A DNA stretch of 64,000 nt from Ostrea edulis (taxonomy: Eukaryota): NCBI RefSeq assembly GCF_947568905.1, contig NC_079170.1, positions 1,612,001 through 1,676,000 on the forward strand, in the 5' to 3' direction. The stretch's first letter is position 1. The number at the start of each line of letters is the position of its first letter. Below are positions 38,692 to 56,973 of this stretch, one piece after another. The notes beneath the pieces were generated by a model. It saw only the letters and a list, made by a program, of their open reading frames with translations, had not been told where the DNA came from and did no database searches. Made by a program: the position numbers and the translations under genes.

Positions 38692-40211
38692 TCAAATTGT
38701 AGAACTCTTGGGGTGTTTATAGTCGAGTGAATCCACGATGAGCTCGACAATATTTCCATGCTGGTTTTCCATGGCAAGTTCCATCGCTGTTTGTTTGTTA
38801 AAATCTCGAGCGCGTATTGCATCTTTTGGTATTCTTATCTCGACTAAAAGCTTGTGTGCAATTTCATAATGACCGTTTGCACTGGCAGCATGCAATGGAG
38901 TTCGTTGGGTGAATCGGCACCATAATTTAGGATCCGCACCTTCCTCTACAAGATATTCAAAGACATCCATGTGTCCATAATATGCCGCCTCATACAGCGG
39001 TGTGCTAAGAAACCCCTTCCCTCCATTGATGTCAAATCCGTGACTTCTTAGAAGTTTCAAAATGTTCAAGTTGTTACGCCTCGCTGCCATACAAGCAGCA
39101 CTCAGAATTGTGGGGGCGTTTTCCTGAACTCCACACCGTATGAGAGTCTCCAGAGCTTCGTAATGAGCACATGTTATTGACAAACATAACGGTGACAAAT
39201 ATGGAATGTTATCCGTGTCTATTGTTTTACTTTCTCTGAGAAAGAAAGCAACAATCTCACTATGATTATTCATCGCTGCTGCAGAAATAGGAGGAATTAC
39301 AGCATCGCAGACGTTTTGTGTGGTCTCGGTTTCTGAACTAAAATCATAGTATTCACACTGTGATCCCCTTTTAACACTTGCTTTCTGCCGTACAAGGTAC
39401 TGAACGACATCCAATTTGCCGTTTAACGCTGCAATGTACATTGGTGACTTGTAGCCCTCGCGTGAGTTAACATCAGCACCTTTGGAAATCAAAAGTTTTG
39501 TAATTGGTAAGGACGTTTGTGCAGCAGCGGACAAAGGACTGTGATAACCGGAATCTGAGTGGGCAAAATCTGTAAACAAAGAAATGCCATCTTTGCGTTT
39601 TGAAATGACAGCCTTATCTACACAATTCCCATGCTCTGGACCGCTCATATTGTCGCTTGGTATTAAGATGTTGATACAATGCCAAGGAATGTACTCTAAC
39701 AGTAAGCTGACTACTTCATAGGATCCGCTGTAGCAGCCTAATATCAGCAGTTTTGTTTTGTCATTGTCACCATGACCGAATAAATAGTTATCGTAAATTT
39801 TTGCTGCCTTCAGGCGTTCTACAAGATAGCTGAAAAGGCTAAAATGTCCATAGTACACAACCCATCGCACAGTTCGTGCAAAGCAAATAGCGGTTTCATT
39901 GAAATATCTTCTTTCTAACATAAGGGGTGGAGGAGAATTTTCTTCCTTTAAAAGCCAAAATCTATCAAATATCCAGGTCATGCTTTCAGTTCCGGCGTAA
40001 AGATCTTTGTCAAATTCAGAGAAGAAGACTTCAAATAGTTCGTCGTTGCTGATATTTTTATCTAGAAAATCAGTAAGGGCTTGTGACACTTTTGGGAGGG
40101 AGCATGTTTTTTTATGGAAAATGTGACCGACATTTCGTTGTTTTATGTTGGCATATATAACCTCTATCAGTGTGCTTCCGATGTCTTTACCAGACGATGT
40201 GTCTTCTTGTT
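38692..40211 (-). CDS. Terminal exon: helical linker plus about 8 ankyrin repeats
   Basis: Frame open from the cattgtag acceptor (40213-40212) to TGA; ANK motifs SPLSAAA, SPMYIAALNGKLDVVQYLV, TPLYEAAYYGHMDVFEYLVEEGAD, TPLHAASANGHYEIAHKLL, TAMELAMENQHGNIVELI. Confidence 0.92.
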
Positions 40212-40747
40212 CTACAATGTATATTCAATAAATTAATTTCAATTAAGTTAGCCTCCAAATTGCAGTGCTGTACATCAGTGTACTTTAGTGCACGTCACAC
40301 CATATGACGTTACAATGAAAAAAGTACGTCATGGCGTACAAGTCTACATGTAGAGTCGTATCGAAGGGAAAATGTCACAATAATTTGTCTTTATCTACCA
40401 CAGCTATCAAGTGATAAGCTGTATACGTGTACAATTTCTTGTCAATATTACTTAAACAGGAATAATATGACGTCACACAAAGCGCCCTACGCCAATTTAA
40501 AAATTCAACTTTCCGTTTACAGTTGACAAAGCCATTGACAGAGATCTGCATGAATTGAAATATAAGTAATAGAAACCTGGTTAATTCGGTAATGTTTCCG
40601 CCATATTGCCAATCATTACATCTACGTAACCGGACGGACATAGAGATTTAGACGGCAGTCAAGTGGCACAATTAAATCAATGTAAAAGCAAAATTTTATT
40701 CGGAGGGAAAATAACATTACTTATTAGGTTTGTAGCTGACTGTCTAC

Positions 40748-56200: not shown

Positions 56201-56973
56201 TAAATAAGAAATTGGTTTTCATCGATATAGAATAAGATATTTCCTAACAACATACTTTGAATGATAACTCGCTGAAGATGTATATCAACCCTCAATTTCG
56301 GATGTTTATCGATCTTTCATTTCATGTGCAAATACAATAATCGATGAAATATCGGCTTTGTCTATGGTAGGTACATCAATGATTATATATACACAGAATT
56401 TTTCCAAATGCAATGTCACTTACGGAAGACAGCTCCTCCGACATTACCTATCAGTGGATACACATAGTTAATTTTGCTATCTATTAAGACGTAGATACAG
56501 AAATAAATTACAAGTATACCTGACAATAACCTCATTTAGGTGCATGTTCTAGGTGACATTGGAATCTAACATTTGTTTAACGTATATTTTTAAAGATATT
56601 CTCGAGAACAGAACTCTACAATTTGTTAATTAAGATTCAAGCATCCATATAGACATAGGTGGATTGAATAGTTTTTACTTACTCTTGAGGTCAACTTTAT
56701 TACTTGACTCAATGTCTCCTTTCGCATCGCCTACTTGTAGACAATAGATATGTCCTTTGGTAAAGGTTGGGTCTTTGATGAGTAGATGTGGGTATGGGTG
56801 GTATTGACTGTTCAGGTATTCCTCCTCAGATATGTCCACTTCTGTAAGGCTGTTCTTATGTAGTACACACCATCTCGCAAAAATCATTCGAGAAGACAAT
56901 CTACAGCTCCTCAATGACACTGAGAAAATTCTTTCCCTGGGATTCCAGAGGCCGATTATAGAAACCAGTGACC
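38692..56973 (-). CDS. Unnamed multidomain gene: 3x Ig-like, DZIP3-type HEPN, 2x TRADD-N-like, ankyrin repeats (5' end incomplete)
   Basis: Phase-1 symmetric exons 56683..56973, 54993..55307, 54619..54912, 48747..48956, 46242..46484, 44826..45317, 44227..44742 and terminal 38692..40211, all with AG/GT flanks and open frames, join in frame (about 1290 codons). The segment 46242-45557 is unresolved. Linkage into one transcript is inferred from phase and strand. Confidence 0.7.
40735..41035 (-). mobile_element. Penelope-like RT fragment next to (TA)n
   Basis: YPCELKIKDTTESSTSASYLDILL...LYDKRDDFSFSIVSFPYLCSNI. Confidence 0.88.
41598..41965 (-). mobile_element. Penelope-like RT fragment next to (TA)n
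   Basis: FNSTFRYIDDVL (catalytic YIDD)...SPAYGVYISQLIR. Confidence 0.9.
42232..43609 (+). mobile_element. Tc1/mariner DNA transposon, 1378 bp, 37-bp perfect TIRs, TA TSD, in an intron of the Ig-HEPN-ANK gene
   Basis: TIR cagtagtacgacataaatgagttcgcaaaatggccga at 42232-42268 and its reverse complement at 43573-43609; TA on both sides. Confidence 0.97.
42442..43488 (+). pseudogene. Tc1-family transposase with one in-frame TAG (43267-43269)
   Basis: HTH N-terminus, FSDE, QEDNAPCH, WPP*IPD..NIIENVW; the same frame continues to ITKY-TAA at 43488. Confidence 0.93.
44227..44742 (-). CDS. TRADD-N-like repeat 2 exon
   Basis: 172-codon phase 1-1 exon with GSILLILRFSSAAQYQSF...GFVDRNISELLL...IFGLSRGEIDVEI. 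Confidence 0.75.
44826..45317 (-). CDS. TRADD-N-like repeat 1 exon
   Basis: 164-codon phase 1-1 exon ending PLKLKASFQCLEDYTNF...YTDVFGLTPSDVSIEV. Confidence 0.7.
45568..45760 (-). CDS. Possible extra exon (helical linker) of the Ig-HEPN-ANK gene
   Basis: Open frame IVIYKKFLF...NLKNIMTEL ending at a phase-1 G|GTAAAA donor that fits the next exon; no convincing acceptor found. Confidence 0.4.
46242..46484 (-). CDS. HEPN (DZIP3-like) C-terminal half exon with R-X4-H motif
   Basis: DLDISQMYLILRK...PTNGWNKRP...SDDIERIHQNRNAFAH; the 3' boundary is uncertain (GTATCA donor assumed; the frame stays open to 46183). Confidence 0.8.
47190..47640 (+). mobile_element. Highly degraded Tc1-like transposase relic
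   Basis: atgctggaagctgggatgtct (MLEAGMS) and ccatggcttctcc...atagaacgtgtatgggat (WP..SPD...IE.VWD-like). Confidence 0.5.
48470..48640. repeat. Interspersed repeat also present at 38405-38585
   Basis: accaattttgatgcaccagatgcgcatttcga...gtgatgctcaa shared. Confidence 0.7.
48747..48956 (-). CDS. HEPN (DZIP3/hRUL138-like) N-terminal half exon
   Basis: CNYHRLVELEEIATKALRNHFNQTIPPMQLKDHI fits the NF.RL..L......ALR..F...IP...L start of this domain; AG/GTAAGT, phase 1-1. Confidence 0.75.
49390..50165 (-). mobile_element. L2/CR1-type LINE 3' fragment
   Basis: KLNDGKTEI, VKNIGAALD, VISHLDYHNALL, LQVVQNNATR, HISPVLQQLHWL. Confidence 0.88.
50726..50985 (-). mobile_element. Full-length tRNA-derived SINE with (ATCA)n tail
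   Basis: A-box tggccgagtgg, B-box ggttcgaatcc, tail atcaatcaatcaat; flanking cgcaat[a/g]attga looks like a TSD. Confidence 0.9.
52245..52790 (-). mobile_element. Penelope-like element 3' portion
   Basis: DKRNDFSFSIVNFPYLCSNIPLSPAYGVCVSQLIRYARAC plus 3' module. Confidence 0.9.
52925..53190 (-). mobile_element. Penelope-like 3' terminal module
   Basis: Near-identical to 52245-52510. Confidence 0.9.
53234..53283. repeat. (CT)n microsatellite
   Basis: Directly visible. Confidence 0.97.
53520..53602 (+). mobile_element. Penelope-like 3' tip, inverted orientation
   Basis: ttgcccaactatctattttgtattgcttgtaggagttatgagattgatcactgttcgttatct. Confidence 0.8.
54048..54418 (-). mobile_element. Penelope-like 3' portion
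   Basis: Same terminal module. Confidence 0.85.
54619..54912 (-). CDS. Ig-like (I-set) exon C
   Basis: KPSVILSGP, IEWQR, KLTIKNADTDDSGYYR; catttag acceptor, GTAAGT donor. Confidence 0.85.
54993..55307 (-). CDS. Ig-like (I-set) exon B
   Basis: VILEADV, MTWLKK, KLVINGFDLDDESVYCLLV; tattacag acceptor (alternative in-phase AG about 45 nt upstream), GTATGG donor. Confidence 0.8.
56683..56973 (-). CDS. Ig-like exon A of the Ig-HEPN-ANK gene
   Basis: tttccag acceptor, GTAAGT donor, 97 codons, phase 1-1; W in the C strand, HLLIKD and YCLQV in the E/F strands. Confidence 0.7.

Follow-up and report, generated by a model that had tools for sequence, protein, structure and literature searches.

In bivalves, DZIP3-type HEPN genes number in the hundreds and TRADD-N genes in the dozens. 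One expansion in Crassostrea gigas joins a HEPN domain to four immunoglobulin (Ig) domains, a DED and a TRADD-N domain, its proteins ending in a beta-propeller or in Mab21/TPR (Kaur et al. 2021, PMC8195603). LOC105331445, LOC105323062 and XP_011454060.1, all with a TRADD-N domain of the NCOA6 clade, are examples (PMC8195603). The fusion partners of DZIP3-type HEPN domains include ankyrin repeats, and these HEPN domains have expanded in oysters (Anantharaman et al. 2013, PMC3710099). Further combinations are present in the available part of the table of Kaur et al. (PMC8195603). HEPN stands directly before TRADD-N in 41 rows, mainly cnidarian proteins named DZIP3, and TRADD-N stands directly before ankyrin in 173 rows from sponges and amphioxus. 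A Lingula protein in the same part of that source combines HEPN, ankyrin, TRADD-N and a helicase. Here we analyzed 64,000 nucleotides of the Ostrea edulis genome (contig NC_079170.1, positions 1,612,001 to 1,676,000), referred to below as the window. It contains an eight-exon locus with Ig-like, HEPN, RRM-like and ankyrin modules. We read this locus as an Ig-HEPN-ankyrin gene of the bivalve expansions, a reading that we favor by a little over an even chance and whose mechanistic steps are inferred.

The eight exons lie on the minus strand and span positions 56973 to 38692. Each exon is preceded by a pyrimidine-rich tract and AG. Exons A to G are followed directly by GT(A/R), have lengths divisible by 3 and are in phase 1 at both ends. 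The terminal exon H is also entered in phase 1 and ends with TGA at 38694-38692. The exons, in the order of transcription, are:

56973-56683, minus strand: exon A, 97 codons, Ig-like by pattern; AG acceptor, GTAAGT donor, phase 1-1
55307-54993, minus strand: exon B, 105 codons, probable V-set-like Ig; phase 1-1, AG/GT
54912-54619, minus strand: exon C, 98 codons, I-set Ig; GTAAGT donor
48956-48780, minus strand: exon D, 59 codons, putative first HEPN helix; phase 1-1, AG/GT
46484-46242, minus strand: exon E, 81 codons, HEPN_DZIP3 core
45317-44826, minus strand: exon F, 164 codons, RRM-like domain, first copy
44742-44227, minus strand: exon G, 172 codons, RRM-like domain, second copy
40079-38692 (stop included), minus strand: exon H, 462 codons and stop, ankyrin array, terminal coding exon

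All 8 exons and all 15 splice sites are intact in the window, and exons A to H join into a single open frame. An earlier note, made from the sequence alone, had described eight same-strand exons with GT-AG flanks, all entered in phase 1 and joined in one frame. Direct reading bore this out, and the frame length of about 1290 codons given in that note was corrected to 1238 codons. The gene structure of the eight-exon locus is real, and we read the locus as coding for protein, either as a gene or as the 3' 1238 codons of a longer one. Exon A is entered in phase 1, indicating that at least one upstream exon with the start codon is missing. This missing 5' end leaves room for more domains; one could be a HEPN at the N-terminus, the arrangement of the known oyster family. 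An alternative acceptor for exon H at 40088 was dropped; it is not conserved in the related contig L001, whereas the acceptor at 40079 is conserved there. When all exons were compared with the window by tblastn, self-matches only were obtained, and no second Ig or HEPN paralogue was found in the window.

Exon E matched HEPN_DZIP3 (PF18738) in Pfam with an E value of 1.3e-11 and 44.9 bits, against a gathering cut-off of 27. The match covers positions 36-107 of the 144-position profile. The motif R-N-A-F-A-H, which has the forms Rx4H and R-N-x3-H with Asn after Arg, was read directly from the sequence of exon E. Rx4-6H, usually with a polar residue (Asn) after Arg, is the catalytic signature of HEPN RNases (PMC3710099), and the DZIP3-HEPN genes of the pearl oyster, 202 in all, most often carry the RNAFAH-type form (Takeuchi et al. 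2022, PMC9646362). The HEPN domain of exon E carries an intact catalytic-type motif, and an RNase role is predicted for it. Exon D contains an E-x3-K motif. It had no Pfam match on its own at E values up to 10, and no Met precedes its HEPN helix. Its position, where the profile calls for positions 1-35, makes it the putative source of the first HEPN helix. Exon H codes for an ankyrin array, matching Ank_2 in five stretches (E 5.6e-39) and Ank (E 1.6e-31). The DZIP3-type HEPN and the ankyrin array named in the earlier note were both upheld, the former by the PF18738 match together with the intact motif and the latter by the Ank_2 match.

The three Ig-like exons differed in how well they were supported. 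Exon C matched I-set in Pfam with an E value of 3.9e-5 (24.1 bits; cut-off, 23.7) and lacks the second canonical Cys. Exon B gave only a V-set match at E 0.056, under the Pfam cut-off, and lacks the first canonical Cys. Its alignment with exon C (hhalign E 0.022) was confined to the region of the L-x-I...D-D-x-x-Y strand. Exon A shows a Cys, a Trp 13 residues on, and a Tyr-Cys 54 residues after the first Cys. It had no match in Pfam (E up to 10) or among PDB sequences, and its hhalign comparison with exon C was not significant. By sequence, exon C is confirmed as an I-set Ig domain, exon B is a probable V-set-like Ig domain, and exon A is Ig-like by pattern only. The three Ig domains proposed earlier are thus one confirmed domain, one probable domain with a weak match, and one that shows the Cys/Trp/Tyr-Cys pattern.

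Exons F and G encode homologous domains. BLASTP aligned them over the C-terminal 47 residues with an E value of 0.002, and hhalign of two small families built for F and G gave an E value of 0.0011. The landmarks N-x...F-G-L are common to both in the alignment. Structures of both domains were modeled using AlphaFold 2. The model of G had a predicted local distance difference test score (pLDDT) of 76.7 and a predicted template modelling score (pTM) of 0.71; the values for F were 69.8 and 0.65, respectively. At the level of single elements, the order in the model of F is b-a-a-a-b-b-a-a-a-b. The order in F and G is alike, b1-a1-(helical insert)-b2-b3-a2-b4, with a2 broken into three. The helical insert has about 40 residues and follows the long first helix in both models. 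As modeled, F and G both fold as an RRM/ferredoxin-like sandwich that holds an insert, and they resemble the RRM-type TRADD-N fold. A reading of their N-terminal halves as Death-effector domains was also considered and was rejected: in the AlphaFold 2 models the chain begins with a strand that belongs to the sheet, and the helices form inserts, not a six-helix bundle.

One defining feature of TRADD-N is its RRM-like fold, a two-layer alpha+beta sandwich in which the four-stranded sheet is antiparallel and the helices are kinked (Kaur et al. 2021, PMC8195603). Its second hallmark is a small-residue-Ser (uS) motif in the beta2-beta3 turn (PMC8195603). In G, this turn, which lies between strands predicted at 102-106 and at 109-116, holds Gly108-Ser109. 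The Gly-Ser motif recurs in three relatives of G, P0001, P0003 and P0126. A structure search with G against representatives returned ferredoxin-like folds only, with Z up to 5.9. The TRADD-N chain 1f3v_A was at rank 10, with Z 5.8, a root-mean-square deviation of 3.9 Å and 110 aligned residues, the longest alignment to G among the Foldseek-list matches that were re-examined. Foldseek of G against PDB gave nothing below E 0.1. The structural neighbors of F were ferredoxin/RRM-like folds. About eight sequences of the F/G family were found, within the range of 94-299 residues covered by the profile search.

The only distant relatives of exon G were L002:1285-1938 (ENA ERZ1756085) and P0126, at about 25-28% identity over the domain. 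Both are single open frames on short contigs of an ENA assembly, and each frame starts in an apparent translated polypyrimidine tract. No adjoining domain exon was found on contig L002. These frames suggest that the one-domain-one-exon structure is shared by another mollusc-like genome.

Closer relatives of the locus were found on genomic contigs. L001 (4.3 kb; Logan ERR13868515) holds exons F, G and H in the window order, and its exons G and H are intact. Contigs L003 to L008 hold F and G, and L009 to L016 hold B and C. Exons F and G are open in L003 and exons B and C are open in L009, with acceptors and donors as in the window. Ratios of non-synonymous to synonymous substitution rates (dN/dS) were calculated against the window. 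They were 0.46 for exon B and 0.35 for exon C (both L009), 0.76 for exon F (L003), 0.33-0.41 for exon G, and 0.53 for exon H (L001, 91% amino-acid identity). The introns of the related contigs diverge and carry different insertions. Rather than neutral decay, the ratios point to a gene that evolves fast under moderate purifying selection. When exon G was searched with phmmer against 1.84 billion representatives, the three matches obtained were all genomic open reading frame (ORF) fragments or a repeat artefact. Searches with exon H, exon B and the F/G profile gave only near-identical genomic fragments and generic ankyrin proteins.

The joined 1238-codon product has no hydrophobic segment of transmembrane quality. 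Exons B and C each lack one canonical Cys, as would suit intracellular Ig modules like those of the oyster HEPN-Ig family. We infer that the product is cytosolic. The cytosolic location proposed earlier is consistent with the window, both in the lack of a transmembrane segment and in the Cys-poor Ig modules; no start exon lies in the window. A transmembrane cassette exon hidden in the C-D intron was considered and rejected, the best candidate having a mean hydropathy of 1.52 and being unsupported. No Walker A motif was present in any frame of the 38-64 kb region, and the sole Walker A of the window lies in a 36-codon frame at 29579 on the opposite strand. No exon had a Pfam match to an NTPase (NACHT/NB-ARC). 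Within the window, the earlier proposal of a product with no NTPase therefore holds.

Several results weigh against the reading of the locus as one working gene with TRADD-N-like domains, and they were considered together with the alternatives that they favor. F and G had no Pfam match, TRADD_N included, at E values up to 10. Their family profile, searched against PDB sequences, returned noise only and no TRADD chain. F has no Gly-Ser; it has Thr-Phe-Pro with a one-residue deletion in the beta2-beta3 turn, and TRADD was absent from the best 50 rows of its structure search. The fold itself is generic. The Z score of 1f3v_A tied with IS200-type transposases and eIF4E, and GGDEF and other ferredoxin-like folds also reached a Z equal to that of TRADD. 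No Death-fold domain matched Pfam in any exon, so this partner is lacking; coupling of TRADD-N to a Death-fold domain (DED, Death, CARD) is frequent, not obligatory (PMC8195603). Together with the family size of only about eight sequences in the range searched, these results would suit an explanation in which F and G are not TRADD-N adaptors. They would instead form a distinct, lineage-restricted family of RRM-like domains that might, for example, bind RNA and present it to HEPN as substrate. We regard this as possible but doubtful. The Gly-Ser turn of G, P0003 and P0126 fits the published TRADD-N signature, and the ending FGL...I-x-V/I-E resembles the L-G-I...V-x-V-E-G ending of the published TRADD-N alignment. 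HEPN, Ig and ankyrin also accompany TRADD-N in oysters, Lingula, cnidarians and sponges. For G, the description as TRADD-N-like is plausible, not demonstrated, and we consider it fairly probable. Of the two TRADD-N-like domains in the earlier note, what stood was the shared RRM-like fold and the Gly-Ser of G; a profile match failed for both, and the motif failed in the turn of F.

The extent and the state of the gene were weighed in the same way. Exons C and D are joined only by strand and phase across a 5.7-kb intron, and the C-to-D junction has no transcript evidence. A to H as one transcription unit is the economical reading, and we consider it probable; we did not rate it higher because phase, being 1-1 in every exon, cannot tell one unit from two. 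The locus might otherwise be an Ig-only gene or fragment (A to C) and a separate HEPN-X-X-ankyrin gene (D to H), the short first exon of which would be hidden in the 5.7-kb interval. Such a division would agree with the catalogued oyster family, in which HEPN is N-terminal and, in the available part of the source, a 466-aa HEPN+DED+TRADD-N protein exists. The same part of the Kaur table has 0 rows with Ig directly before HEPN. If the donor of exon C is unused, its frame stops five codons on. However, exon D follows an AG, starts in phase 1 and has no Met before the first HEPN helix, so it needs an upstream exon. The GTAAGT donor of exon C is strong and is conserved in L009, so exon C needs a downstream exon. 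Between C and D there were only repeat-derived frames, and no other coding-looking or conserved exon was found. We regard two units as rather unlikely. Also on the contrary side, no upstream start exon or N-terminal HEPN was found at 57-64 kb, where only repeat-derived frames occur, and no transcript-derived or annotated protein with these exons was present in the libraries searched (15 billion sequences). Exon F is broken in L001 (L001:108-611, corresponding to window 45317-44826) by an extra A in an A-run near its start, which causes a frameshift, and by an in-frame TAA; its dN/dS against L001 is about 1.4. Combined with introns swollen by transposon insertions and with other dN/dS values just moderately below 1, this could mean a silent or decaying copy, that is, a recently dead paralogue of a fast-turnover family that is open only because little time has passed. 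We consider this quite improbable, since all eight exons and fifteen splice sites are intact in the window, as is the catalytic-type HEPN motif, and a second related genome has B, C, F and G open with dN/dS of 0.33-0.76, which neutral decay does not give. Exon F is intact in L003 to L006, which come from other samples. Being symmetric (phase 1-1), it could be skipped with the frame preserved. In either case, a working exon F is present in some copies and absent in others across the family. To our knowledge, no bivalve DZIP3-type HEPN or TRADD-N gene has been tested biochemically.

The introns of the locus and the rest of the window were surveyed for repeats. The window is AT-rich (31-40% G+C) and filled with repeats, with the look of an animal genome. 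The features outside the exons are:

42442-43266, plus strand: Tc1/mariner transposase fragment in the G-H intron, HTH_Tnp_Tc3_2 (E 8.6e-13) and DDE_3
15649-16302, plus strand: retroelement fragment, reverse transcriptase (C-terminal half; RVT_1, E 1.5e-15), then a PHD finger
17553-21354: minisatellite, 63-bp unit, about 63 copies, 82% matches
21527-21908: minisatellite, 35-bp unit, 11 copies
23153-24149: minisatellite, 36-bp unit, 27 copies
30769-30930: run of 162 N (assembly gap or masked stretch) in a repeat-rich region
40727-41086, 41539-41970, 52584-52823, 57357-57704 and 60875-61060, minus strand: copies of an interspersed repeat (at least five)

The Tc1/mariner fragment is missing from the related loci L001 and L003, and it is not part of the gene product. 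Compared with related contigs, the window carries insertions at about 43610-42231, 41992-40308 and 54417-54054. The G-H intron is 4.1 kb in the window versus 1.2 kb in L001, from two insertions, one of which is the Tc1/mariner fragment. The introns full of transposons described in the earlier note were therefore confirmed in part only, as insertions at three sites, with one Tc1/mariner fragment among them. Two copies of the interspersed repeat lie in the G-H intron and adjoin (TA)n-like microsatellites. The translated frame of this repeat has a common ...DDFSFSIVNFPYLCSNIP... stretch and no Pfam match. The minisatellite at 17553-21354 yields long spurious minus-strand ORFs (17280-19819), and the two shorter minisatellites give repetitive ORFs on both strands.

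HEPN RNases such as RNase L, Ire1, Cas13 and Csm6 need two juxtaposed Rx4-6H motifs. One HEPN per chain was seen here, so activity would depend on self-association. The ankyrin array, and perhaps the Ig modules too, may bind a pathogen- or stress-derived ligand. By analogy with RNase L, the likeliest trigger would be a ligand on the ankyrin array. The tandem TRADD-N-like pair could make protein-protein contacts or act as a conformational switch. Ligand-driven self-association would then pair two HEPN domains and lead to metal-independent RNA cleavage. The outcome might be antiviral, anti-transposon or cell-suicide. A role of TRADD-N as an interaction or switch module has been proposed for the whole class (Kaur et al. 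2021, PMC8195603). The full RNase L-like form of this scheme is an NTPase-free sensor-effector, in which a ligand on the ankyrin array and a diverged TRADD-N-type pair would drive dimerization of the single HEPN to an active RNase. Drawn by analogy, it seems to us unlikely. If it were true, it would be the first TRADD-N-type module in place of a STAND or pseudokinase switch.

The locus alone opens no new category, and its product is not a wholly unknown kind of protein. It contributes a version of the TRADD-N-like domain that evolves very fast. Bivalve immune-gene expansions of such domains have been catalogued computationally and are experimentally untouched. If expressed, the gene would be a compact candidate for asking whether animal DZIP3-type HEPN domains act as RNases and whether they can be switched without a STAND NTPase.

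Compared with the N-terminal domain of TRADD (PDB 1F3V, 1F2H), the modeled domains share the two-layer alpha+beta sandwich with a four-stranded sheet, and G shares the small-residue-Ser turn. G differs from it in having 11% identity, a helical insert of about 40 residues and no Death domain following. The proposed mechanism is similar to that of RNase L, in which ligand binding by ankyrin repeats leads to dimerization, a HEPN-type site and RNA cleavage with no NTPase switch. However, RNase L's KEN domain is a circularly permuted HEPN of another family, its ankyrin repeats are N-terminal and bind 2-5A (2',5'-oligoadenylate), and its dimerization is brought about by a pseudokinase. The likeness to RNase L is an analogy only, with no homology past the superfamily level.

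The DZIP3/hRUL138-like HEPN family (PF18738) is another of the close known systems. The window gene agrees with it in a significant profile match, the R-N-x3-H motif, ankyrin fusions and oyster expansions. In humans, DZIP3 is a TPR-bearing RING E3 ligase, and many bivalve members have NACHT; within the window the gene has neither. Cnidarian HEPN+TRADD-N proteins named 'DZIP3' also have HEPN directly beside TRADD-N. Lingula anatina XP_013416013.1 (HEPN, ankyrin, a TRADD-N of the DEDD2 clade and an SF2 helicase) has the parts in one polypeptide and, like the window gene, no STAND NTPase. It differs in domain order, in the TRADD-N clade, in the extra helicase and in having no Ig modules. The earlier note did not recognize this architecture from any characterized protein. 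That view was not sustained, as its parts and most of its adjacencies are already catalogued (PMC8195603, PMC3710099). What is new, judged against the available part of the published catalogue, is the domain order, in which Ig precedes HEPN, the TRADD-N-like domain comes as a tandem pair and the tail is ankyrin. A tandem TRADD-N pair has 0 rows in that part of the Kaur table.

The C. gigas family is also among the closest known systems, from a genome of the same kind. It has the same HEPN RNase, intracellular Ig repeats, TRADD-N-type domain and repeat-array C-terminus. It likewise has no annotated signal peptide or transmembrane segment, and it shows lineage-specific expansion with fast architecture change. 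The order in that family is HEPN-Ig-DED-TRADD-N-tail, whereas the window gene has Ig before HEPN, and no DED was seen. The window gene further differs in its tandem TRADD-N-like domain with a large helical insert and in its ankyrin tail, and no sequence similarity to that family was detected for exons F and G. On balance, and with somewhat more weight for than against, we place the locus among the lineage-specific, exon-shuffled DZIP3-HEPN/TRADD-N expansions of bivalves and other sessile marine invertebrates.

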